From positions 62,001 through 126,000 of the forward strand of contig JAIVFI010000030.1 of the NCBI GenBank assembly GCA_025558095.1: DNA of 64,000 nucleotides, given 5' to 3'. Position numbers and translations under genes: made by a program. Under the pieces are notes generated by a model that saw only the letters and a program-made list of their open reading frames with translations, did not search any database and was not told the origin of the DNA. Shown one piece after another: positions 1 to 64,000 of this stretch. Every line of letters begins with the position of its first letter. Position 1 is the stretch's first letter. This stretch comes from Hyaloraphidium curvatum SAG 235-1 (lineage: Eukaryota; Fungi; Monoblepharomycota).

Positions 1-191
1 TCCACGACCGCGCGATAGCGTCGTTTCAGGACGTCGCCAGGTACAGGGCGAAGCTGTTCGGGTTCGTGGTGTCGTTCGGGACGGTGAGGACGATGCTGGT
101 GACGGGGCTGACGGTCGCCGTCGCGCTGTGGAGCGTGCTGCGGGCTTTCGGGGTGACGGCGACCCTTGAGAGCTTCTGTCCCGTATCATAG
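1..191 (+). CDS. 3' end (partial) of orphan multi-TM protein, GR-like/7TM-ion-channel-like family, copy 1
   Basis: Frame 3 reads HDRAIASFQDVARYRAKLFGFVVSFGTVRTMLVTGLTVAVALWSVLRAFGVTATLESFCPVS*. This aligns by eye with the C-termini at about 8400-8565, 52730-52920 and 63658-63860. Confidence 0.75.
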   Translation, partial: HDRAIASFQDVARYRAKLFGFVVSFGTVRTMLVTGLTVAVALWSVLRAFGVTATLESFCPVS

Positions 192-404
192 AGGCCAGCG
201 GATGCAGGAAGATCGGTTACTCCCGGAAGTGCTCGGGTTCCGAAGGTGGCGACGTCGTTCCAGTTGTGGCGGCCAAGGAAGTAAGGAACTGGATGGGCTC
301 ATGGGATATTTGGACTAGAAAGCTGGAGTATCTAGTAATTTCCAGGCTTTCTTCCGCCTCTTCCCACTTCTCTCGAAATCGCCGCTGGGCGGCCTCGGCA
401 CCGC

Positions 405-798
405 TCAACTGTCCTCCGCGCACAGGCCCGAGACGCAGACGTCCGAGCCGCAGCAGTCCCCATCCCGGCTGCAGCCCTCGCCCGTGTCGGCACATGCCGG
501 GGCGTACCGCTTGTACAGCGCCCGCCGGTCCCTTGCGGGCGCGACGCAGGCAACCATGCCCGCGGGGGCGCCGGGGTGCGCGTACTCGCAGAACTGGTGG
601 GCGGCGCAATCAGCGCACGAACGGCGGAAGACGGCCGCGGTGGTGGATGGGGGACTGCGCGGAACAGGGGAGTCGTGAGCATCGGGCGGCGAAGGGAAGT
701 CGGCGAACCCACGCCGCGGCGGCCGAGGCGACTGAGGCAACGATTAGGAGGGCGACGATTAGGAGGGCGACGATTTTGACGGCGGTCGTGAACTTCAT
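405..798 (-). CDS. Small secreted Cys-rich precursor: signal peptide, conserved 4-Cys module, KR site, knottin-like peptide
   Basis: Exons 798-713 and 654-405; GT-AG intron 712-655. Protein: MKFTTAVKIVALLIVALLIVASVASAAAAPPSTTAAVFRRSCADCAAHQFCEYAHPGAPAGMVACVAPARDRRALYKRYAPACADTGEGCSRDGDCCGSDVCVSGLCAEDS*. Confidence 0.8.
741..775. repeat. 15-nt tandem duplication inside a signal peptide (IVALL x2)
   Basis: cgattaggagggcga occurs twice in tandem. Confidence 0.8.
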
Positions 799-1760
799 CG
801 TTGCTCACTCCTGTGTTCGTCGGTGCTTGGGGGGACGTCCCCTTTGACCCTTTATGGGGGATGATTTGATGGGGGATGAGGATCCCGAGTCGGGGGATGC
901 GGGCGGCATCCGGCTGTCCTCCCCGCCGTCATCGACCAGCGATGGGTTGGGCGGATCGACCGGAGACCCAGCGATTCGACTTATGAGCTTGCCTCGACGA
1001 CTAGGTGTCATTTTTGTACGACGGAAAACGCTGTCAAGCGATCCAAGGGGACCGAGGTATAGGCATCCCTTGCGGCGTGCGCTCCCTTTGCCACGAACAC
1101 CGATCCAGCCGATAGTTCATCACGGATCTCGTGCTCGGATACTAAAGTCAGGCGGACATTTTTTTGCATCCGTCGACGCTCCTGTTTCGGCGCTACGGCT
1201 GCCTCCGCTGCAGGTCGGCACTACATCGCCCTTCTGTGGTCCTCCACGCACTCGCCCGACTCGCACAGGCCGGATCCGCGGCACTGGGAGCATATCGATT
1301 GAAGGACTGTCTTAAGGAACTAACGGCACATCGAGTCGCGCTGTTGCGGCCGTAAAATGCGAGTTCGAAACGGACCGAAGGACAGTGAAAGGTTGCTGCG
1401 ATGCGCTCCCATAGCACCGCCCCGATTCGGGATCTCGTGCTCGCAGTAGCTCCCTTCGAAGCTCGAACATCTTTCATATCCATCGCGCGCCAGCATCTCC
1501 TCGGCCGAGGGGCAACAGCTGCTGTTTCGACGAACTCCTTCCCAGCGCGACGGCCAGCAGAAAAAGATGGCAAGAAACCCCAGGAAATGCAAAAGAAGAG
1601 ACCAAGCCGCAGTTCATCTCGTTGGAAACTTTTGCCCAGAACGCGATTCGTCCCGTCGTTCCAATCTTCGGTGGCCGGGCGGCTTCACTCCGGCTCGGAC
1701 CCGCTCGACCTCCCGACATTGAGCCCACCAGCACCCCCTCGGCAGCCCCGTCTCCCCACG

Positions 1761-2779
1761 ATGCTCCGCGCCACCTCTCTCTTCCGCGCCGTGCGCCAGG
1801 CCGCGCCCCGCCGCACCATGTCGGGCGCTCCGGTGCGCTTCCGCCCGCGACGCGTCGGAACCAGGAACTGACGCGAATTGCTCCCCCTGGACACCTCGGC
1901 CCCGATGTTGCCCCTCATGATACCGATGTGCTTCCGCCGATGTGGTTGCGACGCGTCGCGCGGGACCATAGCTCTACACGGCCGAGGCCACCGCCGTCGG
2001 AGTGGGCTGCCCTTGCCCCTGGAATCGGAAGCCCGCGTCGCTCACAAACCCCCTCCCCCCCTGCATCGCGCGTCCGATTCTCTCTCATAGGCCAGGTACG
2101 CTTTTGTTCCGACTGCCACCGTGGCCGCCCGGGCGCTGAACCTCCCCGCAGGAACGGCCACGTGAAGTCGAGCGACGGGATCCTGGACTTCGACCTGTCG
2201 GTGCCCAAGGGCATGGGCGGGCCGGGGGGTGCCAAGACTAACCCAGAGCAGCTGTTTGCCGCTGGGTAAGTCCCCCGTGGGGCCGTGGTGTGTCCAATTC
2301 TGACCTTCTGAGCCGTCGACGTGCTCCCCGCGGCCAAACAGCTACTCTGCCTGCTTCGGAGGCGCGCTTGGTGCCGCGCAGGGCATGCTGAAGCTGCCGA
2401 AGTGGGTCTCCTGCCTCCTTTTCGTGGTTTTGGGCACCGATGGACCGGCCGACCCTCACAGGCTGCCCGACAACATGAGCGTCAACGCAAAGGTCTCGAT
2501 CGGCAAGGGCGAGGGCGGCTTCGACCTCGCCGTGGACTTTGTCGTCACCGCTGTGGGCACTTCCGTCTCCAGCTCGCGGTGCGGCTGGATCGACTGATCA
2601 CTACCATTGCAGCCCGGCTACGACAAGGCGGACCTGCAGAAGATCATCGACAAGGCGCACACCGGTGGGCCCTCCATCTTTACCTCACGTTGCTTCGGAT
2701 CTGAACCGCGCTCTCGGCAGTCTGCCCGTACTCCCGGGCGACCAAGGGCAACATGCCCGTGACGACCGTCATCGGCTGA
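1761..2779 (+). CDS. ohr: Organic hydroperoxide resistance protein (Ohr/OsmC family) with probable mitochondrial presequence, multi-exon
   Basis: Spliced motifs LYTAEATAVGARNGH, TNPEQLFAAGYSACF and AHTVCPYSRATKGN, with both catalytic Cys present. N-terminus MLRATSLFRAVRQAAPRR is Arg-rich and lacks acidic residues. Confidence 0.9.
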
Positions 2780-3179
2780 GCATCCTGCTTTCCTCCACTT
2801 CTTTCTTGGCATCTATCGCCCGAATGTTCCGTGGTTGAATGCGCAGCCTTTTCCGCGCGCGGCTGGCATCGCAGGTCCGGGCGGTGTTTGCCTTTGGCGT
2901 GGGTGGCGTCCGGCCGGGCTGTGCGCCAATGCGACGGGCCCTGACGTCCGTCCGTCCAGCTTTCGGCCTCATACGGCACCGAAGAAGGAAGCAAAGTTGT
3001 CGGCTTCAACCTCCGTCCATTCGAGAAAGGAAACCTGGCTTCCATCGCGCGGGAGTTGCGGCGGCGGAACTGTTGTGGGTCCAGCGACTCAGCGGGATGC
3101 CGCAGCTCCGCCCCTTCGGGATCTGGCCGGCCAACACCGCCCGCGGCCCCCCCAGTTCACCCCAGCTCACACCGGACAC

Positions 3180-4816
3180 ATGCTCCTCGCCGCGCTCCTC
3201 GCCGTGCTGCTCCTGGCGAGCGGCGCGCGCGCGACGCCCACGCCCTCCGCCTGCGGGCCGGGCGTCTGCGGGGACGGCATCCTCTGCTGCGACGACTGGT
3301 TCCTCGGTGCGCCCTCCTCCTTCCCTTCCTCTCGCGATTCGGGCTGACTCGCTGGACTTCTGCACGCAGGCGCCAAGTGCTACCTCGCCGAGGTGATGGT
3401 CTGCACGCCCGACCTCGGGCGGGCCGCGGGCGACCTGTCGCTGTGCCCCGTCGGCACCTGGGCATGCGACAGAGCGTGCTATGACCCGTCGAAGTACCGA
3501 TGCGAGGGTGGGAAACTGGAGCTGGGGCCGGCTACGGCTACGGGAACTGGGACGGGGACGACAGAGACGGCGGCGCCCGAGACGACGAGCAGGGTGGTGC
3601 CGACCACCTCGCCGCGCCGCAAGACGACGAGCAAGGGGCCCAAGGCGACGACGACAAAGGCCCGCAAGACGGCCACGACGCGCAAGACGACCACCAAGCG
3701 CCCGACGACCAAGCGCCGGACGACCAAATCCCTCACCGCGGCCCGCAAGTCAACCTCCCGCCCGGTCCCCAAGGCCACGTCCAAGATTCCAGCCCCCCCG
3801 CCGACGACCACCAAATCCGGTCCCGCCCCCACGCAGACCGCCGACCTCCGCATCAAGAACTCGTGCACCTCCACCCTGTGGTTCGAAGCCCGCTGGATGG
3901 GCAAACCCCTACCCGGCCACGCGAGCACCATCACGCGCGCCCTCCCGGGCGAGTACGTTGACTACGTCATCCCCGCCGACGGCCTCGATTCGACGCGGTT
4001 CTGGGGCAAGTTCGGGTGCGACGACCGGGGGAGGAACTGCCTCGTCGGGGACAGTATGGGGTTCTACCCGGGGAACGAGTGCCCGCCCGGGGGGTGCAAC
4101 CCGCCGATCGACAGCCTCTTCGAGGCGACGTGGGGTTGCAAGCCGGGGACGGGGTGCCATGCCGCAAAGCCCACTACGTGGTTTGATACGACCCAGGTCC
4201 GTTTCCGCTGCTGTTGCGTGCGCGATAGCTGACTCTTTGCGCCCTCCAGGTCGACGGCTGGACGATCCCGTACCGCCTCCGCGCCTTCGGCGAGACCGAC
4301 CGCTGCGACTGCAAGGCCGGCGTCTGCGGCTTCTCCGGCGTCGATGCCACCCGCCTGACGCTGGACAAATGCCCCACCGCCGACGACCTCTCGTGGTCGG
4401 GCCGATGGGCGACAACGACCAACGGCTCCAACCTCTCGGCCGTGAACCTGCTCGCCGCCCGGAACGGCGTCGCGGTGGGCTGCATCTCGCCGTGCAAGAT
4501 CTTGACCTTCGCCCCGCCATGGGGCTTTGGCGAGAAGGAATCCGCGGGCGGCGCGGCCACGTACATGTGCTGTCCCACCCCCGATCCCAACCCCGCCACG
4601 TGCCGCCCCGAGACGGGCTGCCTCCTCTCGCCCGAGTGCAACGCGGGGCCGGTCAAGGACACGCAGTACGTGCGGACGGTCAACACGCTGGCGCCGGGGA
4701 TCTACGCCTTCAGCTACGACGACGAGGTCGGGCTGCACGCGTGCCCGGCAGGGACGGTGGTGTACGAGTTTGAGTTCTGCCCTGAGGGATCGGGGGAGTA
4801 CCCGATGCGGGTGTGA
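3180..4816 (+). CDS. Secreted protein: Cys-rich CBM52-like module, Thr/Lys-rich linker, thaumatin-like domain
   Basis: Signal peptide MLLAALLAVLLLASGARA; LCPVGTWACDRACYDPSKYRCEGGKL. Thaumatin motifs IKNSC..TLW, RFWGKFGC, FDTTQVDGWTIP, GCISPC, YAFSYDD. Introns near 3307-3369 and 4197-4249. Confidence 0.8.
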
Positions 4817-5530
4817 GGGCGTCGACGGCACCGCGGTGTTGCCCTTGGCGAGCACTCTCCTCACGTTGGCGGGCACGGCCGGCCGGGGGGCGGCACGGAG
4901 CAGCGGGCCCAAAGGCGACGCGCGGAAGAAGGCGGCGGCCTCTGCGAAGCCGCCGTCGAGCGACGCGGCCGCCAGGGACTCAGCAAGATCCGCCATGGCC
5001 GATTAAATTACGTCAGAGGCTCGGCGGCCGCGCTGCCGGTTCACGGTACGGTAGACGCGACGTTGTTGACTTGATGTCGAACCTGCCTAGGTCATCCACC
5101 CCGGCGCGGTGCTCCTCATCTAGCTCCATCCCGCCGATCAACCACGCGGATCCAGCTCGCAAAGTTCTTCGGAAAGCCGAGGAGAGGTTGCTTGTCGGGG
5201 GCGGACACCGCGCATCCGGATGTACTATGTAATCTTTGCTCCTCAACCGCGCTGAGCTTCTGGGCCTCAGCAGGCTCGCGGGAGGTTTCTTCCCCGGTCC
5301 CAACCCCGCGGGCACTCCTTTGATGCCGCCAAAGTGGACGGAAGGGGCATCCGGGACGGATCGATGATCTCGCGGAGCGAGTGAGGGACGCCGGGCCCTG
5401 CAGGGCCAGACGCGCGCAAGCCGCCCGGTCCAAAGTCCCGATTATATCGTACCCAAAGTAGCGTGGTCCTCATACAAAGTTGCTCCTCCTGCAATACCCG
5501 TCTACCCATCCATCCTTTTGTAGCCGGCGC

Positions 5531-6473
5531 CTAGTACATGGCGGCGGCGGCGGCAGCGGCGGCGGCACCGAGCACGGGCATCAGCGTGGCGCGGACCATG
5601 CTGCCAGCGCCGGGGCGGCTGGTGGTCGCGGTGGCGGTGACAGCGGCGAAGGGGATGGTGGGGGAGCCGTTGACGACGGCGGCGCACTTGGCGGTCAGGG
5701 CGACTGCGGGGGGGAGTTGTCAGCGCGGGGTAAAGGGCGGGGAAGGGCGAGACTTACAGACGGAGGGGCCGAGCGAAAGGGTGCCGCAGTTGCCGGCGGT
5801 GACGTTGAAGGTGCCGACGCCGGTGAAGGGGATCTGCATCGACAGGAAAACGCGTCACTTGAGGCGGCCAGCAGGCGACGGGGAGAAACCCACGGTGCAG
5901 GCGTCGTTACCGAAGAAGGCCATGGTGCCCGAAGCGGCGCCAGGGGCGCAGGCAGGGCGGCCGAAGGCGGGGATGCCGATGAAGCCGAGGGGCACGCACT
6001 GGTTGGCGATCACGGCGGCGGCGGTGAGGTAGGTGCCGGTGCAGGTGGCGCCGGACCACTGGGTGACGACAAAGTACTCGCCCTGCGGATGGGAGCGGGG
6101 CGTCAGCGCTGGGCCGGGCGCGGAAATGGGGCGCGGAAACCGACCGAGCCCTGGAGGGTGAAGGACGGGGGGGCGTTGGCGTTGCAGGTCTGGGTCACGT
6201 CGTAGTTGACTGTGGCGTTACTGGGAATGCAGGCGACGTTGCCCTGGCAGGTGGTCGGCAGGTTCGCCTGGACTGCTCGGCAGGAGAGGGAAAGGGGGGA
6301 CATGATCAGTGAGGAGCGGGTGGGGGCCCGGGCGTCAACGCACAGAGCTGCGGCGCGGTGGCGTTGACTTTGCAGCCCGAGCCGGGGATGAAGCCGTCGA
6401 TGATGGTCGCGGCGCGCGCGGGGGCGGCGGCCAGCGCGAGGGCGGCGAGGATGACGGCGGCGGCGGCGCGCAT
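5531..6473 (-). CDS. Secreted, probably GPI-anchored Cys-containing surface protein, multi-exon
   Basis: Signal peptide MRAAAAVILAALALAAAPARA; Thr-rich stretch and hydrophobic tail ...GAGSMVRATLMPVLGAAAAAAAAMY*; four short introns. Confidence 0.7.
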
Positions 6474-7213
6474 TTCGGCGGGGCGGCGGCGGGGCGGCGG
6501 GCGCTGAGACGGCGATCCGAAAGGCGCGGCGGGGTTGTGGCCGACGGCGGAGAGGCGCGGGTCGAGTGACTCGGCGGGGGAGCAGAAAAGGTGGGGGGGT
6601 GCGCGGGCCGGGCCACCCAGCCGGCAGGGGACTAAGCCCCGATTCCCGGCCCCCGCGCAATCAAGCCGGCCGACGGGCGGCGCGATCGCCGGATCGGGCG
6701 CGGTAACAGGATCGGCATCGCAGGACATTGCGCAAAGGCCCCTCGGGACGCATCCGGCAGGGCGGAAAGCACGAGTGACCCGCCCAGGCGCCGAATGATC
6801 CTTGCCCTTGCGTCGACGCCACCACCGGGGACTCGTACCGGCCAAAGGAAGCGCGGATGGGGTTGCAGTAAGCTTAAATAAACCGATCGGCGATTCAGAT
6901 ATGGGCCATCCGCGCGATTCGTCGCTCGGCGGGCCTGCGCGATGTGTCTCCCATCTTTGTCACCCAATCAAATCGAATCCCCCGCATGTGCTTTCCAATG
7001 TTCCAATAGATGGCGCACTTACAAATGACGCTCTACGCCGTTTCGTCGGACAAATAAACCGCGCGCAGGGTGCCTGCCTCGACAACGGCTCCGGGATCAG
7101 GCCCTGATCACTGGGAACCGTCAGCGAGTTAGGTGGCCTCTGCCTCGGAAACCGCCCCTCGTCCTTCGGCATTAGTAAACGCGTTGAAACGCGTTTTTGG
7201 CGTTGCCGATCGT

Positions 7214-8565
7214 ATGGGAGCCTGCTGTGCGGCCGCCGCTTGAGGCCCGCGTCCGCCGGCGGAACCGTTCTCCAAATGGACCGGGGACGCCTTCCTCGCC
7301 TCCCTCCGCCTCGCCTCGCCGGGGCTGGCCGCGTGGACAAGGGCGCAGATCGCCGTGGCGCCGTGGGTTGCCGGCCACGTGCGGCTGCGCTACACGGCCT
7401 TCTGGGTCCTGGGGTTGGCGCTGCTGCCGATCCAGTGGATCGCCAACAACGGCAGGTTCGGCACGGCGCAGCTGGCCGCGGGCACGGCGAGCTCGGCGGT
7501 GCTGGGGCTGGGCGGCATTGCCGCGGCGCTCTCGTCCAGGGGCTACGGTTCGCGGTACGAGGCGCCGGCGGGGTTCGGGCAGCACACGCTGGCCGTCGTC
7601 GCGCGGTGGGCGCAGCTGGTCCTCGGAGATCCGGCGGACAAGGGGCGGTCTTCGAAGCTGCTCGTGCACGACCCCAAGGACGGGCTCTGTCCCTGCCCGC
7701 TGCCGACGTGCGCGCGGGGCACGGTGGCGCTGGCCGGCCCCATCCGCTTCGCCGAATCCGCCCTTCGCTTGTCCAGTGCGTGGCTGTGGACGATCTTCTA
7801 CTCCTTGTGGATGCCGGCGGTGACATTCGCCGCGTTCACGTGGCGCACGCCGTGGGCCGCCACCCTTTGCGCGGTCTACATCGCTCTGAACCTCGAATTT
7901 CACTGTGCCAACGTCATCGTAATCCAGCCTCTGAGCTACGTTTCCCTGGAGCTCACCCTCAGGCTCCACAACCGGGCCATGTCGCTGGCCCTGGACTACC
8001 TCGTCCGGCGCTGCGGCCTGCCCGCGACCGAGGACCCGGCGCCGCCGTCGGGACCGCCGCCGGACGACGAGACGTACATCCTCCTCTACGAATCCATGAC
8101 CGCCGTATGGCAGCATCGCATCCGCTCGGCGGCGTTCAGCACCCGCCTCCTCGCCGTCGGCATCGTCGCCCTCGCGTTGACCGCCGTCGCCGGGATCGCG
8201 GCGGGCAACTGCCTCCCCGCCGCCTTCTTCTTCCTCCTGGCCTGCTACCTCCTCGTGCTCGCCTCGGACCTGGCCAACTTCTCAGAGAGCACCTCGCACG
8301 TCGCCGCCGTCCGCGCGCTGCTCCTCCGCGCGCGCACCCGCCTCCGCAGGCTGGCCCTCTCCCCGTCTCTCCCGCCCGCGCGGCTCGCCCTGGCGGAGAC
8401 TTGGACGCCTCGCCGGGGTGTTTGGCCAGGTACATGGGGTTCGCGGTGGACAGGGCGGTGGCGCGGAACGTGGCGTCGACGCTGTTTGCGATGGCGGTCG
8501 GGCTCTGGAGCGTTTTGAGGGGGAGCGGAGTCAGCGTGGGCCTGGAGATGGCCTGCGGGGGCTGA
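7214..8565 (+). pseudogene. Orphan multi-TM (GR-like/7TMIC-like) family, copy 2, disrupted
   Basis: Motifs NNGRFG, HDPKDGLCPC, AAGNCLP, DLAN and several hydrophobic segments. In-frame TGA at 7241 follows ATG 7214. A frameshift near 8395 moves the family C-terminus (ARYMGFAVDRAVARNVASTLFAMAVGLWSVLRGSGVSVGLEMACGG*) into another frame. Confidence 0.65.
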
Positions 8566-9954
8566 AGTGTCGGCGTTGCTGCCAAAAGATGGTTCTGCGG
8601 TCTTCCAGGTGTTGTGGTGGGGGCTTGTCGCGAAACACCGCATCTCCCGCCGGCTGCGGAGACCACCGCCCGGGCAAGAAAATGGCATGTCCGTCAGTGT
8701 AGCTGATTCACGGCTGCATGATGATCTGCAGTACTGTATTTTTTGTTCTGAGCGGGCCGGCGGAGCGAACTGGACGCTGGCCTGGCTGAGCAAGTTGAGA
8801 TCCGCGAGCCAGCAACACCGCCGCCCTTCCCCGCTGCCGCTGCAAGCCCGCGCCATGGCCGCCATCGCTGTTGCACGTGCGTCGCGGTGGCGTGAATTGC
8901 AGCCGCCGCTAACGGGCCCGCAGCGCGCTCCGGCGTCAGCATCGTCCTCCCGCGCATTGCGGAGGGAGCCGGCCTGCTCCCTCAAGCGGCGGCCCCCGCG
9001 CATGTTCCCAGCGGCGCCCTGAACGAAGGGTTCCATGCGCCCGCCGAAGCGCAGGAAGCCGCGAGGGTCATCTTCCCGGGAGCAGCGCCCGCCGTTTATC
9101 ATGTGCAGGCGACCGCTGATGTCGCTACAAACGTCGAGGTTGCTAGTGAAGGCGCCGGAAACGCGCTCGTCGACGTTCCCGCCGCGGCTCCCCGCGCTCC
9201 CCGGGCGGGCAGGAGGGTGAACCTCGGGGCCGGGCTCCGAGACCTCGCGGTAAGCCAGGGCCGGACAACGGAGAGGTCGAGCAGCTGAGTGCCCGCCCTC
9301 CCTACACCAGTACGAAGCCGTCATCACCGTGGCAGCGGAATCCAGCTGCAATGTTCTCACAAGGGCGCCGGCGACGGTCCTCGCTGCACCCGTCAGCGCC
9401 GGCTTCGGGGCGGTCGTAATGCACAGCTACGCCAGCCAGCTCAAGGATCTCACTGGCAACGATGTAGGGCTGCTTGCGACGCCGTCTTGCTTCTGAACGC
9501 TGATCGCGTCGCCCGGGCTTCCAGATCATGCGCTGGACCTGCACCGGGGCGGCGATCTTCGGATTCGCAGCCTTGGGGAGCACGGTGGTCTATTACATCT
9601 TTGAGAGGCCCACGTACCCTGGAAACCCGCCCCGGGGTAGGGCGGCGGGCATCGCCCTGCAGTGAAGTTGCACCCGAGTCGCCCAAGAGCAAGTTGCAGA
9701 GCGGACATGCCGCTAGCGAGCTAGCTGGTCATTGCAACAGCCCTGTCGGCTCTCTGCCATTTATTTGACAATAGTGGAGCGTTGCGAAGGAGGAATTCGA
9801 AGTGCTCCAGTCCATCATTGTTCGTCGTGGTGAGCAGGGACAGATAAAGCTTCGCAAGTAACACTCAAATGCACATTTCAATCGATCTCCTAACTCGGTC
9901 CACATCCAAATAGCGCCGTCCCGCCCTAAAGCCCCATTGCTCGGCAGCTCCAGA

Positions 9955-11365
9955 TCACAGCTTGGCCTTCTGGTCGCCGAGCTGTCCCTCGGCCGGCGAA
10001 TCCACGGCGATCCCGCTGCCCTTCTTGGTCCCCGCCGACTCGTCCCACGGCCTCGTGACGCGGCCCAGGGCAAACTCGGGCGCGAGCGTGTCCTGGAAAT
10101 GGGGTTCGGGATTGGGTTACGGGGGGGGGGGGGGGGGAACGGAGGGACAGGGGACCCACCGATCCGTAGGGCATGTCCTCGAACTTCTCCGGCTTCACCG
10201 GCGGCGTGTGCTGGCTCGTTGCCGGCGAGTAATAGCCCATGGAGTGATCCATCATACTCAGGAAACGGTTAGCGCCATCGCATGGGGAGTGCCGCGGGGG
10301 TCACCTACGCGTACCCGACCAACTCCTGCACCTCGGGGTCAAGGGTGCGCGCCACCTCGGGAGGGACGGAGAGGTAGTGGTTCTCCTCGGAGCGGAGCCA
10401 GCCGAGGGAGAAGGAGACGTGCATGCCAACGCGCCTGCGGGGACGAAACGGTTTTGCGTGAGTCCGCGCGCGGATGGCCAGGGGAACAAGGGTGCCCACC
10501 AGTCGTCCTTGGTGACGTTCGCGCCACCGCCGTGGATAGTCGAGCCGAGATATAGCCTGCATCCGCAAGGAGTAATTCAAGGGCTGCGGGCCAGGCAGGA
10601 CAAAGGATGCAGGGCTACCCACACGCACGAGCCCTTGGGCATCACCGCCTGCCGCACGTCCCGCCCCTCGGCATCGGGCATGTACGAATTCAGCGGCCTC
10701 GCGTGCGTGCCGGGAACCACCTGTGTGGCTCCGTTCTTGTCCGTAAAGTCGGAAAGCGCCCACCTGCCCGGGAGGGAGCGACAAACGGGTTTCGGTCAAG
10801 CAGCGCTCGAGCATCGGGGAGTCCCCGCAGCCGCGACACACATTGTGGCCACCATGGGCTCGAGTTCCTCAGGAAGATGCTTGCCCCAGGCGACGCGGTC
10901 GCGGTGGAGGGGCTGGGCGGGGGAGCCGGGGCCGATCTTGATGATCTGGGCCACGTGCAGCTGCGTCGCGCGACTGCATTGAGCGGGTGCTTCACCCTGG
11001 GGCAACAGACCGCCCACCTGGTACCGCTTCGCATGCTCCAGCAGGTGCTCGTCGGCCGCCGCACGCAGGAACCGGTTCTTGAGCACCGCCTCGTTGAAGG
11101 TAGGCGACCTCGCCGGCAGTGCCCCGCAACGGACCGTGTTCTTGCCCGAAAAGTCGTCCACGCCGGACGTGGTCCCGCCAATCCAGGGCGCCATCTCCGC
11201 CACGATCCGGTCTGCTTGCGCCGGAGAAATTGCGTACTCGACAATCACGGCGCCGTCCTCGCGAAGAATACGAAGGGCGTCCTCGGGCTTGCAGGTGCGC
11301 CCGTCGACGCGGCGGACGTCGGGGAAGGAGTGTTCCATGGTCGCGGTGGCAAGGGCGGTCGCCAT
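9955..11365 (-). CDS. Phytanoyl-CoA dioxygenase (PhyH) family Fe(II)/2OG enzyme with PTS1, multi-exon
   Basis: Motifs DGAVIV, AQPLHRD (HxD), WALSDFTDKNGATQVVPGTH, TIHGGGAN, LGWLRSEEN; C-terminus QKAKL*. Confidence 0.85.
10121..10137. repeat. G17 homopolymer (intronic poly-C on the sense strand of the PhyH gene)
   Basis: 17 consecutive G. Confidence 0.9.
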
Positions 11366-12087
11366 TTCGACGGGTTGAAGGGTGGCGGGCCTCTCGGCAC
11401 AGAAAGAGCAGTCAGGGTGGGTCAAACAAGGGGTAGCCTGGTCGCCTGAGGGAAGACGGCGATGGAACTGCCTCTGAGTGGCGGTTGTGTGCGGCTGCGG
11501 CGATGCGCTCGGAGCGGAGCTGGCCGGTCGCCATTGGCGCCCGATCGCACAGCCTGATCGGGAGACATCGACACATTTCCCATGGGCTGCCTCTTTCGCA
11601 GACCTCATTTGTGTGTCGGATACGCTACAAAGGAACAGGAAGATGTCGCGCCCTGCATCGCAGTCGAGCTAGCGCCCGCCCTCGGCGTCAATCTCACTCC
11701 GATCGAACCCCGGTTGCGACACACTCCCCAAGTAGGCCCAAACGAAGGCTGCCGAGTGGATCGATGCCATGGGATGCAGGACATGCCGACGAGAGCCTTT
11801 CTCGTGGCTTCCATGCTTCGAATCAGGGCGGGCCTGCTTCTGCCGCAGATCCGCCCCGGGGGGACGTCAATCAGACCTCGGTCTACAGGGAGTAGCCGCA
11901 GGGGGGGAGGCAGTAAGTACAATTTATTCACCAGAAGCTTGATATTGGCCCGGTCGTGAAGCAGAACGATGCTGGGGCAGGTGGTCAATTAGTTAGCACG
12001 ACGCTTCGACCGGGCCGCGCGTCCCCGTTTGCCACTCCCCCTCGTGCCCACTCAGTACACCCCTACGGACCTTCAGGCGCCCGCGAT

Positions 12088-13264
12088 ATGTCTCCCGCCA
12101 TCGCTGGTCGCCCCGACCTGCTCTCGCTCCCGCCGGAGCTCCTCGCCGACGTCGCGCGGCGCGTCGCCGCCGGCCCGGGACTCGCGCAGCTGCTCGAGTT
12201 CGGCCTCGCCCACCGCGTGCTGCTCGCCACCGCGGTCCCCGCGCTCTGCCGGGAAATCAACGTCGTGAAGAAGGATGTGCGGCTACTGCGGTCGTTGGCG
12301 CGGGCCTATGCCACGCCGGGGCTGTTTGAGAGCGTGCGGTCGCTTCGGGTCGTGGCGGTCGGCCAGAGCGAGGCCGAGAAGAGGGAGGCAGGACAATGTG
12401 TCGCTCGGCTCATGAGGAAGTGCTCCGGGCTCGTGGATCTTACTTTCGGGGTCAGGGCGGCGTTCGACTGGGCCCTGCTGCGCGAATCGAAGCTCACCTC
12501 CTTGGATATCTCGGTGGACGATTCGAAAATCCTCCGGGGCCTGTCGGGCAAATCTCGCCTTCCACCAACGCTCAAGAAGCTCGAAGTCTCGTGCTTCTTT
12601 GAGCCAAACCCTCCATTCTCCCTCAATCCCCTCTGGGAACTCGTCGAGCGACACGCGGAGCAGCTTGACGAGTTGTGGGTCGCGTTGGAATGCCGCCAAT
12701 CTTCCCGCCTGATTTGATTTCCCGCGTCGCAGGATCTTCGAACCCTTTCAGCCCGGGACATTCGACCTCGCCCCCTTCCCCCGCCTCGTCTCCAAGCTCT
12801 CTGTCCTGCGCACCTACTCGGACAATCAGTCCCTGCTCTCGGACCTCGCCCACCTTCCCCAGTTTCGGCCGCACACGCTGAAGCTCTGCGACGTTGATCA
12901 CGCCACGTGGGACGCGCTGGCCCGCATGCCCTCGCTCAGGCATCTCTGCATCCTCGACGACGGGACGCACTACTTTGCCTGGGGCCTGCCACCGAACTTG
13001 AAGTCCCTGGAGTTCATCCGCGCGCGGCCCGGGCTTTCGGAAGTCGACTTCGACGCGGCGCGCCTGGCGGCCAGGGGGCTGGACATGTGCTTCGTCGTCA
13101 CGGAGGACGATGAGGGGAACAGGCAGGGCGACAGGCTGTTCTTGTCCTTGGAGTGGGACATGCTGTGGGAGGACATGGACAACGTGGCTGCGGAGCTGTG
13201 GCCCAAGCGGTACATCGGAATCAGCTCTCGGCGGGGGGACTTGATCGGCAACCAAGTCGGTTGA
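12088..13264 (+). CDS. F-box-like/LRR-like protein, tandem paralog A
   Basis: N-terminal LLSLPPELLADVARRV; Leu-rich repeats; one intron at about 12675-12733; clear similarity to 13452-14659. Confidence 0.75.
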
Positions 13265-13451
13265 CGACCGGCCTGGCATTGCACAGCAGGCATAATGCGG
13301 TCGCCGAGAAACTTGAACAGAGATTGATCATCCAGTAGGCTTCTGATGCGTCTCGTCTCGTCTGCCGTGACCAAAGGCGTGGATCCGGCCGACGATTAGC
13401 ACGATCCGGCTCCGCCTCGGCCCTCGCCACATCTCAACACGTCCTCCAAAC

Positions 13452-14659
13452 ATGGACCCGCTAAACGCGCCGCTCCTCCTCTCGCTCCCGCCTGAGCTGC
13501 TCACCATGATCGTCCGACGCGTTGCCGTGCCGGGCTCGGCGCAACTGCTCGAACTCGGGCTCGCGTGCCGCGCCCTGTTGCCCGCGGTGGTCCCGCACTT
13601 CTGCCGCGAAGTTTTCCTCGGACAGTGCCCCGTGGGGCCCCTCCGGGCGCTTGCCCGGGCGCACGCCACGCCCCTGCTGTTCGAGAGCGTGCGCTCCCTG
13701 AAGTTCAGCATGCTCGAGGGCGCCGGCGTGGAACAGAAGGAGGCGGCAGTTTGCGCGGCGCGGATCCTGCGAAAGTGCCGGCAGCTGCGGGATTTGTTCT
13801 ACGGGATCAAGGCTCCCCTCGAGTGGGGCCTCGTGCGGGAGTCGTGCTTGGTCAGCCTAGAGCTGAACGTCGTGGACAAGAGCATGGTCCGCGGCATCTC
13901 GGCAAAGACGCGGCTGCCGCCGACGCTGCGGGTCATCATCATAACGACGAGCCTGGGTCGCCGGTCTTACTCCCTCGGAGCGGTCTGGGATCTGATCGAC
14001 CGGCACGCGGACCAGCTCGACGAGTGGTGGGGCGCGCTGCGGTCCGTCGCGCCACAAGGACACTCACCCGAAGGCGCTTCAGGTGGCTGCTTCCTTTCGA
14101 CGACGGCGACTTTTCCCTCTCCGCCTACCCCCGCGCGATCCGCAAGCTCGGGGTCGTCTACACCTTCTCCATCAACCAGCGCCTCCTCGCCCACCTCGTC
14201 TCCCTCCCCGACTTCCGCCCCCGCGAGCTCCGGCTGTGCGACCCCGACCGCGCCACGTGGGACGCCCTCGTGCGCCTCGATTCCCTGCGGGAGCTGTGGC
14301 TGGTGGACGACTCGACGCGGTGCCTCGGCTGGGGCCTGCCCCCCGGGGTCAAGAAGCTGGTCCTGGAGCGGGCCTGGCCCGGCATCCCCCTGAGCGAGCA
14401 CGAGGCAGCAAGGAGCGCGGTGCGGGGCGTCGACGTGGTTTTCGTCATCACCGTCGGGTCCGCGGGCGTCCCCGCGTACCGGGCGGAGGGGTGGCGGATG
14501 CTTTCGACGTACGAGTGGCGCACGTTGTGGCAGCGGATGGACAACGTCAGGGCGGTGATGCGGATGAAGCAGTTTATCGGCTGGAGCTCCAGGCCGCAGT
14601 GGATCCTGGACCGCGAGGAGTACTTCCCGGGCGGGCCGCTGGACATTGTCGACGGGTGA
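13452..14659 (+). CDS. F-box-like/LRR-like protein, tandem paralog B
   Basis: LLSLPPELLTMIVRRV. Shared blocks with paralog A: LFESVRSL, RLPPTL, ATWDAL, WGLPP, MDNV. One intron at the same position. Confidence 0.75.
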
Positions 14660-14972
14660 TTGAGTGCGTATCCTGCGGGCGTCGGAGGCCGAAGCGCCTC
14701 GATGCTGACGTGTGGGAAAGCCCGCGCATGATGTACAGCAATCCATATGATCCATCATCACCGTTGGGAAGACGCCTAAGGTCGTACTTGCCCGAAATTC
14801 GATTAGCACGACGCTCCAGCCTGTGCAAGCCGGCGCCGCACCGGGCGAGAGAACTTGCGGCGAGGCTTTCCGTCCGCAATCACGCGTGTGCGACCAGCAG
14901 GAACATCACCATAGCTCACTGCATTAGACAACGCAAATACGTAGATACGATACAACACGAAGCAGTCCCGCT

Positions 14973-16927
14973 TCACGAAGACTCGTCCGCCGTTCCCCTC
15001 GCCGTCCTCTCCGCATACCTGAACCCCGTCCCCGCCAGCGCGTCCACCCCGGCCCCCTCGAACCACGCCCTCCCCCTCCTCAGCGCCTTCTCCGCAGTCC
15101 ACCGGCGGTGCGGGTTCCACGCCACCGTGCGCTCCAGCAGGCGCAGCAGGAACGCGTCCCGCGCGAGGTCGTACCGGTCGCCCGGCGGGGTGGAGGGGGT
15201 GCCGGGGTGGGCGGAGCGGCGGAAGGCGGCGATGTCGTCGAGGGAGTGGCGGGGGCTGGAAAGGGGGCGGTGAGGAGGGAGATCGGGCGGGGTGGGGGGA
15301 CGCACGTGAAGATGAGGTGCTCGACGTCCTCGAAGAAGGCCGTGTCGACGTACTCGGGCCAGTCCTCGACGGTGGGGCGGCCTAGGACCCCGCAGACGCG
15401 TCGCACGTGGTCCTTCTCGAACCTGTGGGTCGATGATCGAGATTGCGTCAACTCCGATCTGTGGGCAAGACGCCCCGCCACCGGACTCACCTGTAGCCCC
15501 ACGGATCCCTCCTCACCCGCACCCTCCTCACCTTCATCAAATCGATCTCCCCGTCCCCGGTCCCGAACGTGTCCTCCCCGGCGCCCGACACCGGGCTCCA
15601 CTCGTCCTCGCAGCACGCGTCGCACCAGCAGTCGTCGGGCGCGTCGGGGCCGAAGCACTCGCTGCCGCAGTCGCACACGGGGGACTTGACGGGGCGGCCG
15701 GGGAACAGCGGGCGGAGGAGGAGGAGCTCGGCGAGGAGGGTGCCGAAGGACCAGAGGTCCATGGCCGAGCCGTAGTCCTGGGCGGAAGGGGAAGGGAGGG
15801 TCAGCGGGAGCAAGACACGGCGTTAGCAGGGCAGCCGACCTTGAGGCCGAGGAAGTGCTCGGGGCAGCGGTACCAGAGCGACTGCACGAGGCCGTCTTTG
15901 TGGAGCGCGCGGACCTGGGAGCGGAAAGACCGTGAAGCGGCTAACGATCAACCGCTCGAGCCCAGGAACCCCACAGGATCCTGGAAGAACCGCGCCAGCC
16001 CAAAGTCGGCGACCTTGACCCTGCCCTGCGCCGACACGAGCACGTTGGCCGGCTTGATGTCGCGGTGGATGATCCAGTTGTCGTGGAGGTACTTGAGCGC
16101 CTGCAGCACCTGGAAAGCGATGGAGCGGACCGAGGTCATGGGGAGGAGAGTGTGGAAGCGGTCCTTGTGCAGCTCGATGAGGTACTGGGCATGACGGGTG
16201 AGGGAGGTGAGAATTAGCGTGGCAAGCACCCACGGCCAGGTCAAAGTCGAGGTGCTCGAAGATGAGGACGGTCTGGTGGGTGTCGGGCATGCTCTTGGCG
16301 GCGAGGAGGTTGACGATGTTGGGGTGCGAGCACTGGCGGAGGAGCTGATAGGGCAGAGGAGGCGATCAGTCACTGGTGCGAAGTCGGGTTGGAAGACGGG
16401 TTCTACCCCACCGCGATCTCGCGCAGCGTCCACTGCGGCAGGCCGACGGGCGCCTTGATGTTCTTGAAGGTCCTAGAGCGCTTGATCACCACCCGCAGCT
16501 CGCCGGGGACCATGTGCTTGCGCATGACCTCGGCGGGGATCAGGCCGCGCTCCACCACGCCGTAGGTGCCCGAGCCGAGCACGCCGTCGACGAGGATCTT
16601 TTCCAGCGGCACGCGGCGCACGGCGTCCCTGAGGCGCAGTCCGCGCTCGGTTTCGCGCGCGAGGGCGGCGCGGTCGATCGGCGGCGCGGGGCGCGCAAAG
16701 TACGGAGAGGTCGTGGACGCGCGCGGAGCGGCGGCGGCCACCGGAGCCGCGTGGCGCGCGTCGGCACGGGCGCGTTTCGCGGGCGGCGTGCGGCGCGCGG
16801 GGATGTACGCGGCGTCGTCGTCGGAGAGCGCGTCCGCGTCGGGCACCTCGGCGTCGCCCGCGGCGGGCGGCTCGGGCGACGGCGCGCCGCGCTTAAGGGC
16901 GCCGGGAGGGGCCGCGCGGGAGGACAT
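14973..16927 (-). CDS. Cyclin-dependent kinase, divergent CDK8/Srb10-like, multi-exon
   Basis: Motifs [66 protein letters not shown]; Cys/Asp-rich insert. Confidence 0.85.
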
Positions 16928-17153
16928 GGCGAGGGGCGAAGGGAGGAGGTGGTGTTGTTGAGTGATGACCTGGCGGTCTTCGCATGCATCAGCCCGCCCG
17001 CCGATCACCATCACCACTTCGCACGCAAAACATTCTCGGCCTAGATTTCAACGAATGAGCATGGTACAGTATCGGCAAGGTATCCTACGGTATCGCATTC
17101 CGGCCAGCGTCCATCCCCTGCCTCGGACACGTCCTTCCCTGCGGGGGCCCCCC

Positions 17154-18565: not shown

Positions 18566-19234
18566 GGAATTGCGGAGGCGGCTTTTCTGACGGAGGAAAG
18601 GTGGAAGGAGGGAGCAAGGAGGGATGCGAAGACGAATCGGAAGCCGGGGCGCAGGTCCCGGCGCCGGAGGGGGCCGCCTGGAGCGTCGTGCTAATCGAAT
18701 CTCGGGCGGATCCCAGCGCCGTCGGGCCGTCCAGGGCCACTCTGAATCAGCAAAAAGCTTTGTTAACAGTTCTTGATTGAAGTACCGCGAATCTTTGCCC
18801 CCTCGTTTGTCGTAAGGGGTCTCGGTCCAATCTCCCAAGCCAAGCGTCGTGCTAATCGTCCAGCATCACACGGCTCCGAATATGAGCACGCTTTGCAGCC
18901 CTGAACAAGCAGCCATCTCGATGCTGGTGTCGTTTCTAACCATTTCCGGTGGATCTGCTCTCTGCCGGAGGCAAGAAGCTGGAACGAACGCAACGTGCCC
19001 CTGCCTCCCGGAAGATCAGGCGTGTTCTGACCGGAGGTTAGCGCGATGATCTGATTGCTCGATTGCCTTTTGCTTGCTGTCTATGAATTTCCAAAGGCAT
19101 ACAGGGATCAGGAGGGCACATGTCGGTTTCCCGAAGCGGCCGAAAAGCCCCGCCGCGCGGATGCCGCACCGTCAGTGTTCCGCTCGGAAGCGAGGGTTTC
19201 TGAGGCAGCGAATGGTTGCGTTGCCTTCCCGACG

Positions 19235-50297: not shown

Positions 50298-51311
50298 TCA
50301 CAGCTTCAGGTCGGCCGAGTCCCCGATGCGGTAGAATCGCAGCGCATTGGTGCGCAGGATCTTCTTCCGATCCTCCTTGCCCACACCCATCCGCCTCAGC
50401 ACGATCATGTTGGCCCTCACGATCTCGCCGAGCCGCGCCTGCCCGCCGTCGACGGGGAAGTTGGACGCCCACATGCACCTGTCGACCCCGAACGCCCCGA
50501 CCGCGTGGGCGATCATCCCGCCGAACACGCCGTCGGCGATCTCCCAGCGCGTGACGGAGGCCGCGCCGCCGGGGCGGAGGTGGTAGTCGAGCCCCAGCGA
50601 GGCCATGAGCCCGCTGAGCTTCGCATGCACGTTCTTGTTCGCGGCAAGGAGGTCGATGGCATCGGCCCAGGCGCGGAATTTGGAGCCGTCGGGGTCCTTG
50701 GCGATGTCCAGCGGCCCGCCGAAGTGATCGAGCACCATCGGAATCCCGGGGAACCTAGCTGCGAACTTGGCCGCCTCGGAGATCTGGTGCCCGTAGCACC
50801 ACAGCTCGAACGAGGCGCCGTGCTTCTCCAGGACGGGCATGGCACGCAGCAGCCGCTCGTTGAGGAACGGGTTGGCGTCCCTGTGCCCCGACGAGTGCGC
50901 GCCGGACGGATCGTTGGTGACGGTGTAGCGCAGGCCCCGAAAAGCAGGGCTGGCGGCCTTGTGCGCGGCCAGGCACGCGTCCACGTCCTCGGCCGAGCGC
51001 ATCAGATTGACGTGGCCGACGATGGCGCGGCACACGCGGCCGGCGGTGGGCACCGTCGCGTTTTCCGCCACCCATTTCGTCTCGTTGGCCTGGCCGACCG
51101 GTCCGCCCTCGAGCCAGCCGCACTCGAGGTAGACGGAGCACTCGAGGAGCAGGCCGGCGTCTTCGTAGTCCTTGAGGTAGTGGCTCACGACGTAGTCGCG
51201 CTCGCCACCGGGCACGGCAAGCTTCGGCCGGCGGGCGTCGTCGACGAGCCAGAGATGGTGGTGCGCGTCGACGATGCGGCCGCCGTCATCGAGCGCGTCG
51301 AGGGCTTCCAT
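50298..51311 (-). CDS. Amidohydrolase-2 family protein, intronless paralog of 21196-22784
   Basis: IVDAHHHLW, ETKWV, FRGLR, FELWCYGHQI, DHFGGP, NVHAKLSGL, DRCMWASNFPVD, FYRIG; ends LKL*. Confidence 0.9.
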   Translation of the reverse strand: MEALDALDDGGRIVDAHHHLWLVDDARRPKLAVPGGERDYVVSHYLKDYEDAGLLLECSVYLECGWLEGGPVGQANETKWVAENATVPTAGRVCRAIVGHVNLMRSAEDVDACLAAHKAASPAFRGLRYTVTNDPSGAHSSGHRDANPFLNERLLRAMPVLEKHGASFELWCYGHQISEAAKFAARFPGIPMVLDHFGGPLDIAKDPDGSKFRAWADAIDLLAANKNVHAKLSGLMASLGLDYHLRPGGAASVTRWEIADGVFGGMIAHAVGAFGVDRCMWASNFPVDGGQARLGEIVRANMIVLRRMGVGKEDRKKILRTNALRFYRIGDSADLKL

Positions 51312-51435: not shown

Positions 51436-52920
51436 ATGTCCACCGAGGTCCACGAGAAACCCGAGCCGTCACCCCGTCCGCGGCTTTTCGCGCCGCGTGA
51501 TTGGCGCCTGCTGTTCCCCAGCGGGCGTGCGGGCAACGGCTTGGCGTCGTCGTCCCTGCTGCCTCTGGACGAGGTCGGCGACGGCGACGAAGGCGATGCC
51601 GCCGCAGGATCAGATACGGCCACGCCTCCGACAATGGACCAACTCGCCGCGGCTCTCAAGCCCGCGCCGCCTCTATCGACGCTCGTGTGTCTTGACATTC
51701 TTCGTGCCTCGGCATCAAACGGCTTCGTGTACGCCAGCATGATGATCGTCTTTTCCGGCCTCAAGCTCGCGCTGGCCGCCTCTTCGGTGTTCGCTTTCAA
51801 TGACGGGCGCTTTGGCATGCCGCAAATGATTGCCGGAATCGTCGCCTACGCCTCCAACCAACCTACATCATCATTTCGCACCTGCTCGGGAGGGGCTGGT
51901 TCGGTGACGTAACGTCGACGACGACCGCAGGTCACGCCTTGCTTCCCTTGTTGAGCTACTTGGACGAGACCTGGCCCGGGAACCGCCCGACTTCGGGCAT
52001 TGAGAACGAGATCGCAGCGCAGCACATCCTCGAACACGACCCGGCAGACTCGTTGTGCCCGTGCTTCTCGTGCGCCGGTCGACTAGTGCAGCGCGCCGGA
52101 GCTGCGGCGCTTTTGACTAGTCTCTTTTGGTGCCTGGAAGAAGTTGTATGGCACCCGTTGGCTACGAACTGGCCCGCACTGGTGACTTTTGCCGACCGTA
52201 CCTGGCCTTCCGCATGGGCTTTGCTCAATATGGCCGTCATCTTGAGCGGGCTTGCTTAATCAATTTTCGTTTGCATCGAATCCATCGGGTGGCGGCAAAA
52301 TCCGTTCGTACTCTACATTCAGAGCAGGATATACCGGCGGGCCGCCAAGCTCGCGCTCGCGGACTTCTACATCCGCGCCCGCGCCGCCGCACGGGACGGA
52401 CAGCCGATCCCACCGGCAGCATCGGAACCCTACTTTGTCCTGCACCATCGCTTCGCGGAAGTCTGGCGCGGCCGCATGGTCGCGTCCGCCGCCATCCGCG
52501 GGGCCGTGGTCGCGCTGCTCCCCGCGGTCATCGTCGGCCTCATCATAACCTCGCCGCGGGCTCCTGCGTCACCTTACCGGGCCTTTTTCTGTTGCTTCTC
52601 AACTTTGCCGTCATTTCCCAGGATCTCGTGCACGCCGCCATCTCCAACGCGCAGATAGACTCGGTGCTGGACCTGTACGCGGAACTGCGCGAGCGCCTGC
52701 GGTCATTGCCGCCCAGCGAGGGCGTGCGCGCGCATGCAGACCTGCTTTCCTCCTTCCTTGAGGCGTCGCGGCTCCGCGCGACGGTGTTCGGGCTCCCCGC
52801 ATCGTTCTCCCTCCTGCGCGCTGCGGCTGCGTCTCTTCTGACCGTGGCCTTCGCGCTCTACGACCTGTCCGCGGATCCGGGGTGTTTCTCACGTTGCAAG
52901 TTGTCTGCCCCTCTCGTTGA
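51436..52920 (+). pseudogene. Orphan multi-TM (GR-like/7TMIC-like) family, copy 3, multiply frameshifted
   Basis: Family motifs are scattered over different frames: NDGRFG, HDPADSLCPC, AAGSCV, DLVHAAISNAQI, HADLLSSFL...ATVFGL, RGSGVFLTLQVVCPSR*. Confidence 0.7.
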
Positions 52921-63354: not shown

Positions 63355-63468
63355 CGCCGGTATCCGCGCCTGCGGGTGATTCTGCGAAGCGAGGTGGGTC
63401 CTGCGGCCATCGGCCCGCCTAGGCATCTCCGCCCATCATCCAAAACCACCGTCACGCCGATCCAGGAG

Positions 63469-63530
63469 CTTCTACTGTTCACATCCAGGTCAATCTCTGC
63501 TTCTACTGTTCAAATCCAGGTCAATCTCTG
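63469..63530. repeat. 31-bp tandem direct repeat (2 copies, 1 mismatch)
   Basis: cttctactgttca[c/a]atccaggtcaatctctg x2. Confidence 0.9.
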
Positions 63531-63657
63531 GAAGTTGTACCCTGCCATCTACCCCCTGCGCGAGGCGCAAGAGGCCCTCGTTCGCCACGGGGTCGCCAGT
63601 GGCGGCTGCCTTCGAGCAGTATCGAGAAGTGATTCGATCGGCACATCATCAGCACAT

Positions 63658-64000
63658 CTATCCGAGCTTCTGGATCCCGCACATCGATTCCATGGTCACT
63701 GTCACGCCGAGCCCGCGCACGATGCCCCACAGCGCCCCGAGCGCCGTGAGCGCCGTGACGGCCAGCGTGCGGACCAAGCCCCACGTGACGGTGAGCCCCA
63801 ACCACCTGGCGAGAGGCGCCTCGGCTGCGAGGCATCCCAGCAGGGCAGCGTGGTCCCTGATTGCGGCGGCAGCGGCCGGCGGCATCCCGGGCCGTTGGAC
63901 AAGGAGGCGGAGAAGCGCGCTCCGCCCGGAATCGAAGACGTCGGCGACGGCTGCAACGCGGGCGTTGGCAGCGGCGATGTCGAAAAGGTACGAAAAGGAA
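63658..64000 (-). CDS. 3' part (partial) of orphan multi-TM (GR-like/7TMIC-like) family, copy 4
   Basis: SFSYLFDIAAANARVAAVADVF...DHAALLGCLAAEAPLARWLGLTVTWGLVRTLAVTALTALGALWGIVRGLGVTVTMESMCGIQKLG*. Confidence 0.75.
   Translation of the reverse strand, partial: SFSYLFDIAAANARVAAVADVFDSGRSALLRLLVQRPGMPPAAAAAIRDHAALLGCLAAEAPLARWLGLTVTWGLVRTLAVTALTALGALWGIVRGLGVTVTMESMCGIQKLG

Follow-up and report, generated by a model that had tools for sequence, protein, structure and literature searches.

[quoted passage not shown] GRs end in a split seventh helix, consisting of S7a, a beta-hairpin and S7b, and S7a forms an anchor domain with the cytoplasmic parts of S4-S6 (PMC12635824). Outside animals and plants, insect-type receptor channels have been described in the searchable papers as one to a few genes per species, with a single gene in each Spizellomyces species and six genes each in two protists, while the plant DUF3537 families comprise 4-12 members per plant (PMC7746228). 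A 2023 structural screen detected none in the fungi surveyable there (PMC9998090). The searchable literature contains no paper that we could find linking Hyaloraphidium to insect-type receptors and reports only single fungal genes of this kind.

We analyzed a stretch of 64,000 nt from the fungus Hyaloraphidium curvatum (henceforth termed the window) with a 500-position profile hidden Markov model (HMM) of the family, built from 28 intact paralogs located elsewhere in the genome. Four stretches matched the profile far beyond chance, and no fifth place did (Table 1). The sequence-only reading of the window had claimed four related copies, which is confirmed by E-values ranging from 1e-100 (copy 2) to 8e-25 (the copy 1 tail), with copy 3 matched in pieces (E 2e-21 to 2e-3). 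The motifs it had listed likewise recur where it had placed them in a scan of all six frames: N[ND]GRFG at 7445 and 51799, HDPxDxLCPC at 7667 and 52035, AAG[NS]C at 8198 and 52553, and the terminal R[GA]xGV-x5-6-C at 141, 8518 and 52870 and, on the minus strand, at 63717-63703. Its four locations and the family membership of each copy stand; the strand of the last copy had to be corrected, the first and last copies turned out to be parts of second exons with the bulk of both genes outside the window, and the two copies in between do not have unbroken reading frames. Pairwise identity from copy to copy is 30-35% across all four. They are likely to be very diverged, old paralogs of one lineage-specific family, two of them apparently intact and two broken.

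Table 1. Positions of the four family copies in the window and their matches to the family HMM.
Feature	Position	Strand	HMM match and remarks
Copy 1, 3' part of exon 2 (TM7a, beta-hairpin, TM7b, C-tail)	1..191	+	439-499, E 8e-25
Copy 2, main frame (TM1 to TM6)	7244..8398	+	53-425
Copy 2, TM7 piece in a different frame	8401..8565	+	452-499; stop 8563-8565
Copy 3, pseudogene	51436..52920	+	five pieces in three frames
Copy 4, most of exon 2 (TM6 to C-terminus)	63658..64000	-	390-499, E 1.8e-30

Copies 1 and 4 appear to be intact genes, each with one conserved phase-0 intron of 60-67 nt. The whole of copy 1 occupies C30:60655-62191, with its stop codon at 189-191 of the window and with exon 1 (360 aa) and a 67-nt GT..AG intron located 199-1346 bases upstream of the window start. 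Its product corresponds to the gene call P0154 (537 aa), which we used for all copy 1 protein analyses and which is spliced exactly between TALYA and AVGRC. In copy 4, exon 2 extends from the stop codon at 63658-63660 to 64059, and exon 1 lies past the window end; the predicted splice removes a 60-nt GT..AG intron at 64060-64119 and is not used in the NCBI model P0160, which ends within the intron. When its exons are searched separately, the pieces of this gene (L014) meet at profile positions 366-368. The same interruption recurs in the subfamily of copies 1 and 4, where 11 members break at profile positions 363-372 and resume at 359-366 (mostly 365-366). In the nine members printed whole, the intron starts with GT(R)NGT, contains a branch site of the CTGAC/CTCAC/TTGAC type and closes with YAG directly before GC[CG]GTCGG; L059 has the branch site and 3' end with a 5' site that is not clear, and L060 was displayed only as far as the acceptor. 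Since these 11 paralogs break at one profile position, nearly all with GT..AG borders and a CTGAC-type branch site, we no longer regard the shifts of frame in these two copies of the window as random pseudogene lesions, and the splice of P0154 at that exact site further backs an intron in copy 1.

Copy 2 lacks a start codon and the N-terminal ca. 50 profile positions, and an in-frame TGA is located at 7241-7243. The EWLALFP-type N-terminal motif of the family is absent from every frame of 5400-7400, and an upstream exon that might supply the N-terminus was sought and not found; RNA contig depth is zero over 6971-7364. Profile positions 426-451 are missing between the two pieces of copy 2 in a space too small for an intron, so its frame is broken. 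An RNA-derived contig aligns to 7697-8828 without any difference or joint and thus carries the break over, which excludes both an assembly error and removal of the break by splicing. This contig may be a transcript of copy 2 itself or the 5' end of a gene beginning near 8815. Copy 2 is a frame-broken, start-less copy covered by RNA contigs, and the expression evidence for the family consists only of such contigs over this broken copy. Copy 3 is a dead pseudogene, with at least three frameshifts (51855-52014, ca. 52547 and ca. 52865) and an in-frame TAA at 52257-52259; codon-level inspection revealed no GT..AG intron fitting any of its breaks. Introns at the breaks of copies 2 and 3 were therefore rejected, as space and splice signals are lacking and the RNA contig runs unchanged through the copy 2 break.

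Family-averaged hydropathy reveals seven hydrophobic segments connected by long inner loops (62, 67 and 74 residues) and short outer loops (7, 5 and 3 residues), the asymmetry expected of the 7TMIC superfamily, which holds the insect odorant and gustatory receptors. Lysine plus arginine amount to 31.1 on the side of the N-terminus and long loops versus 1.2 on the short-loop side. From hydropathy and the positive-inside rule, we predict a cytoplasmic N-terminus, three long cytoplasmic loops and an extracellular C-terminus, in line with the earlier expectation of seven transmembrane helices and an internal N-terminus. A GPCR-like topology with an external N-terminus is rejected by this charge distribution and by TM-scores of 0.07-0.10 to GPCRs. 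Intact members comprise 481-538 aa, of which ca. 100 aa form an N-terminal cytoplasmic extension and ca. 400 aa the core, in keeping with the ca. 350-500 residues of 7TMICs. TM7b is the best conserved helix (column entropy 1.71 bits versus 2.7-3.1 bits for TM1-6), and TM2-5 are the most variable. The TM7b consensus, RTxxVTxxTVxVGLWxxLRGxGV, has no Y or QF at the spacing of the animal Gr TM7 signature TYhhhhhQF. The first cytoplasmic loop contains an invariant H-x3-D-x2-C-x-C-x2-4-C cluster, whose H and three C do not vary across 109 sequences; further invariant cysteines are located in the TM5-6 outer turn and at the C-terminus.

At the sequence level, a link to any known family is absent. The Pfam families 7tm_6, 7tm_7, Trehalose_recp and DUF3537 matched neither the window pieces nor the 28 members at E<=10, and the Pfam rows obtained are at chance level (best E 0.043, one member each). 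Across the whole genome, the PF08395 and PF12056 profiles gave zero matches at E<=1, and a search of PDB sequences with the family profile returned one row (E 0.49) and no OR/GR-type chain. [quoted passage not shown]

We obtained structure predictions for the paralog L003 (pLDDT 87.8, pTM 0.87) and for P0154 (pLDDT 86.1, pTM 0.85), which are ca. 25% identical to each other. The top 7 rows of one Foldseek search and the top 12 of the other consist entirely of GR/OR chains (probability up to 0.98, E 0.035-0.47), and for both models, alignments that cover the full chain and preserve the helix order were obtained with OR/GR/Orco chains alone. Most other rows align ca. 75-235 residues of helical bundle, at most 268, and TM-scores to GPCR and transporter rows are 0.07-0.15. 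In the ESM Atlas, a cnidarian cluster (TM 0.71 by target, 357 aligned) and an arthropod cluster rank best, and the nearest named clusters by language-model features include DUF3537 (0.92) and 7tm_7 (0.86-0.88). DSSP assigns a helix, an EE--EE hairpin and a second helix to the C-terminal region of both models (457-480 and 491-514 in L003; 468-483 and 500-523 in P0154), as well as an extra strand after TM5 and a strand in the C-tail. The TM4-6 helices extend 25-50 residues past their membrane segments, and both predicted models exhibit a split TM7 and an anchor-like domain. These predictions make it quite probable that the family adopts the 7TMIC fold; they support the earlier 7TMIC-like interpretation. 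A seven-helix family that merely converged on the OR/GR helix arrangement and serves another role, e.g., as partner-signalling receptor, transporter or scaffold, appears unlikely to us, given that whole-chain alignment is confined to OR/GR/Orco for two such distant paralogs, that the 7a/hairpin/7b split and anchor-like extensions are specific features, that the language-model features, as an independent line of evidence, favour DUF3537 and 7tm_7, and that GPCRs and transporters score so low.

The suggestion of a very large repertoire, made from four copies alone, holds genome-wide as far as copy number is concerned. A profile search of a public protein library yielded 463 representatives at 50% identity with E<=1e-3 (294 at E<=1e-30), and a sample of 17 representatives included 16 hypothetical proteins of H. 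curvatum. Two genome searches returned 535 and 468 first-look candidates in the 31.9 Mb assembly, with 107-114 candidates scored per search and all matches listed passing the cutoff; the copies are several hundred rather than few. Direct comparison of loci identified contig C48 as an exact repeat of C30, by which family counts are inflated; a DNA self-search of window positions 1-20000 had not listed this second copy. A word-indexed protein search with a 109-member profile returned 8 proteins, all from Hyaloraphidium, and is uninformative on other taxa; among metagenomes, 328 stretches were matched by an alignment of 6 closer members, none of them confirmed as relatives, while the alignment of 28 members offers no stretch of sufficient conservation for such a scan. 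Members are mostly intron-free. We think it likely that the family comprises several hundred unnamed seven-helix membrane proteins of ca. 490-530 residues specific to the H. curvatum lineage. A rival reading treats the copies in the window, and possibly a large part of the family, as relics in decay, either pseudogenes or sequences carried along with duplicated segments, whose count would overstate any working repertoire. It would accommodate the broken copies 2 and 3, the internal stops or frame breaks in several genome matches, the truncation of some NCBI models and the repeated contig, but is very improbable, as the reading frame of most fetched members is uninterrupted over 480-540 codons and paralogs of 30-35% identity keep the invariant H, C, C, C, C...C, N, G and R and the conserved intron with intact splice signals, which requires long purifying selection.

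Compared with insect ORs, GRs and Orco, this large family of predicted 7TMIC fold lacks detectable sequence similarity and TYhhhhhQF, adds the ca. 100 N-terminal residues with the conserved EWLALFP-type motif, and has the invariant cytoplasmic His/Cys cluster and outer-side Cys pair; it occurs in a fungus that has neither neurons nor flagella, and the channel function of the family is putative. With SpunGRL1 and SpalGRL1 of Spizellomyces (Benton et al. 2020, PMC7746228), compared here by description, it shares an early-diverging fungal host, a seven-helix GRL-like topology and a poorly conserved TM7 motif. Those are single genes per species found by sequence, whereas the Hyaloraphidium family, with its several hundred members, was found by fold only, and in a monoblepharid-lineage fungus. 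Plant DUF3537 (PF12056) and other unicellular GRLs belong to the same proposed superfamily; despite the DUF3537 language-model score, PF12056 matches nothing in this genome at E<=1.

Judging from the predicted fold, the family may have channel and chemosensory functions. Its proteins would assemble as putative tetramers with TM7b helices lining a cation pore, which might open when small ligands bind within the helix bundle, in its variable outer half, and the expansion would then constitute a chemosensory repertoire. The TM5-6 outer-turn and C-terminal cysteines could form an extracellular disulfide, and the His/Cys cluster may hold a structural metal ion, probably zinc. We tentatively propose, as a possibility somewhat short of an even chance, that the 7TMIC repertoire of H. 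curvatum is larger than any other known outside animals: several hundred putative ligand-gated channels, expanded independently of insect ORs and GRs and equipped with a zinc-holding loop and an outer disulfide, that serve as a unicellular chemical-sensing array. If true, a fungal expansion as large as the odorant receptor set of ants would mean that this fold has been recruited for massive diversification at least twice, and hundreds of natural, mostly intron-free and sequence-diverse channels would become available for structure-function work. It would also pose the question of which signals a planktonic, non-motile fungus perceives through such receptors.

The four places at which the sequence-only reading had seen copies of a seven-helix membrane protein family were recovered by a six-frame motif scan together with all of its motifs at their positions, although the fourth copy proved to lie on the minus strand. 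The stretch, C30:62001-126000 of a 31.9 Mb assembly in 55 contigs, has a G+C content of 66%, and the identical or close NCBI entries for its encoded proteins are all H. curvatum 'hypothetical protein' records (locus tags DFJ74DRAFT). From paralogs fetched from the genome, 28 with a single unbroken frame of 481-538 codons were chosen and aligned (alignment A1) to build a 500-position HMM. Over the window's complete set of six-frame pieces, this profile matched only at the four reported places (main pieces E 1e-100 to 8e-25), the same that tblastn with nine paralogs returned. Pairwise identity among the copies is 30-35% (computed on the pieces of each copy joined by an X at the breaks), so they are old paralogs rather than recent tandem duplicates. 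Copy 1 was analysed as its stored gene call, P0154, and the exons of copy 4 were analysed separately.

Coordinates of the family copies and neighbouring features (window positions unless a contig or locus is named)
Feature	Position	Strand	Observation
Copy 1	1-191	+	gene extends upstream of window start (L013, preceding DNA)
Copy 2	7214-8565	+	no start codon; about the first 50 profile positions absent
Copy 3	51436-52920	+	frame changes between 51855 and 52014, at ~52547 and at ~52865; in-frame TAA at 52257
Copy 4	63658-64000	-	gene extends past window end (L014, following DNA)
NCBI model of copy 4 (P0160, DFJ74DRAFT_685793, 433 aa)	63661-64119 and L014	-	extends into the 60-nt intron as far as the intronic TGA
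RNA-derived contig over copy 2	7697-8828		zero differences, zero joints
RNA contig depth 0	6971-7364
Ser/Pro-rich single-pass protein	L013:381-2045		just before window start, directly upstream of copy 1; protein-kinase motif GEGSFGVVY...VAVK
Well-covered gene	5436-6411	-	three CT..AC introns of 54-71 nt
Stretch with DNA copies	5642-6411		92% at C30:58165-58941; 85% at C30:49590-50435
Transcribed gene	8815-9792	+	47-78-nt introns (RNA-derived contigs)
Transcribed gene	10091-10839	-	47-78-nt introns (RNA-derived contigs)
Amidohydro_2 (PF04909) domain gene	~50325-51272	-	E 3.4e-27; abuts copy 3, directly upstream
Repeat of C30 part	C48:14740-27447		base for base; covers window 1-8565 and beyond

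In neighbouring genes, the RNA-derived contigs of one public run lack stretches of 47-78 bases bounded by GT..AG or CT..AC, which identifies a eukaryote with very short introns. In copy 1, the HMM alignment ends at position 370 and resumes at 366 in a different frame 43 bases on; copy 4 breaks at this point of the profile too, and its two parts are separated by an in-frame TGA. We searched the genome with the first part of copy 1 and ran the HMM on its nearest relatives. In each of the 11 subfamily members, the alignment is interrupted at HMM 363-372 and picked up again at 359-366, usually at 365-366. The inserts seen in full (nine of 11) have a 5' GTGAGT, GTGAGC, GTACGT, GTGGGT or similar site and a CTGAC, CTCAC or TTGAC branch-like site, followed by a YAG end directly before GC[CG]GTCGG. 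The insert at locus L059 has the branch site and 3' end, its 5' site being unclear, and that at L060 was seen only up to the acceptor. Judged from these signals, the subfamily break is a conserved phase-0 intron (copy 1, 67 nt; copy 4, 60 nt). P0154 (a public-collection gene call of 537 aa) is spliced exactly there, and copy 4 is presumably spliced likewise. Under this two-exon model, the conserved second exon of copy 4 (TM6-TM7, the part in the window) is left unannotated by the NCBI model.

The remaining copies are broken in other ways. An intron fits at none of the breaks in copy 3, which, on its sequence, is a pseudogene. For copy 2, a search upstream in all frames found no N-terminal motif, and near 8400 the frame shifts with loss of profile positions 426-451, leaving too little space for an intron. 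Since the RNA-derived contig runs unchanged and unjoined across this break, the break is real and not spliced out. The 3' two thirds of copy 2 are thus represented in RNA. The downstream plus-strand gene begins within ~250 bases of the copy 2 stop, and the contig might therefore be part of the 5' end of that gene.

At the sequence level, the family is an orphan by all searches made: Pfam gave no match even at E<=10, the family profile found no relevant chain among PDB sequences, and the 7tm_7 and DUF3537 profiles found no match in the H. curvatum genome. Structure models were obtained with AlphaFold2 fed with family alignments, for the intact paralog L003 (45% identical to copy 2; pLDDT 87.8, pTM 0.87) and for P0154 (pLDDT 86.1, pTM 0.85). 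The top Foldseek ranks held only gustatory and odorant receptor (GR/OR) chains, with probability up to 0.98, weak E-values (0.035-0.47) and TM-scores of 0.23-0.46. The best shape matches in the ESM Atlas were a cnidarian cluster, with TM 0.71 by target, and one from arthropods; by language-model features, clusters of DUF3537 and 7tm_7 were among the closest that bear a name. We regard these model-based links as leads, not proof. In contrast to insect GRs, the Hyaloraphidium family lacks the motif TYhhhhhQF. Published fungal 7TMICs in the searchable literature are single genes from two Spizellomyces species (PMC7746228), 'Fungi' in a 2023 preprint survey comprises Chytridiomycota and Blastocladiomycota, and no paper in the searchable literature ties Hyaloraphidium to these receptors.

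Family-averaged hydropathy gives seven membrane segments. Mean K+R is 31.1 on the N-terminal 120 residues plus three long loops versus 1.2 on the three short loops plus C-tail, which argues for an inside N-terminus and an outside C-terminus, the orientation of ORs and GRs and opposite to that of GPCRs. Both models predict TM7a, a beta-hairpin and TM7b, with long cytoplasmic extensions of TM4-6; these predicted features match the S7a/hairpin/S7b arrangement and anchor domain of GRs (PMC12635824). TM7b is the most conserved helix (column entropy 1.71 bits versus 2.7-3.1 for TM1-6) and TM2-5 vary most; DNA-level matches across the genome were obtained from the TM7 exon only. Among the motifs, N.GRFG falls in the TM1-2 outer turn, AAG.C in the TM5-6 outer turn, GF.V in the hairpin, and R.G.GV...C at the outer end of TM7b and the C-tail. 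The TM5-6 and C-terminal Cys are near-invariant and each lies beside a predicted short strand, from which a disulfide between them may reasonably be inferred. H-x3-D-x2-C-x-C-x2-4-C, wholly invariant in 109 members, is located in the first cytoplasmic loop; the metal binding proposed earlier is plausible here as a structural zinc site, which would be inside and not ligand-facing.

The very large family expected from four copies was borne out. Genome searches gave 468-535 first-look candidates, of which each search scored only ~110, with two partly overlapping match lists; all listed matches were significant. A search with the profile against 1.84 billion representatives clustered at 50% identity returned 463 proteins at E<=1e-3; tightening the cutoff to E<=1e-10 leaves 412, and to E<=1e-30, 294. 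H. curvatum entries accounted for 16 of 17 representatives looked up, the other being an environmental cluster. The metagenome contig of that cluster (L069, JGI 3300043314, 2895 bases, 54% G+C) codes for a fragment of 323 aa that shares 53% identity with a member of the Hyaloraphidium family and adjoins an SNF2-related gene, so that at least one other organism has the family. Because contig C48 repeats part of C30 at a constant offset of 44451 (fetched loci L001 and L002 are the same, as are L055 and L056), copies 1 and 2 were counted twice in genome searches; either the assembly is redundant here or the duplication is very recent. Given the bias from this repeat, fragmentary annotated models and broken loci, 'several hundred' members is a safe figure and an exact number is not.

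The DNA immediately before the window start carries receptor-like kinase genes and further members of the family. The DNA copies of stretch 5642-6411 adjoin other family members, which points to joint duplication of neighbouring units. Other long window ORFs tested against Pfam gave no match.

Hyaloraphidium curvatum thus carries a huge, selected, sequence-orphan family with 7TMIC fold and topology. Its members would be putative tetrameric cation channels with TM7b as the pore, and may be gated by ligands held in the variable outer half of the helix bundle.
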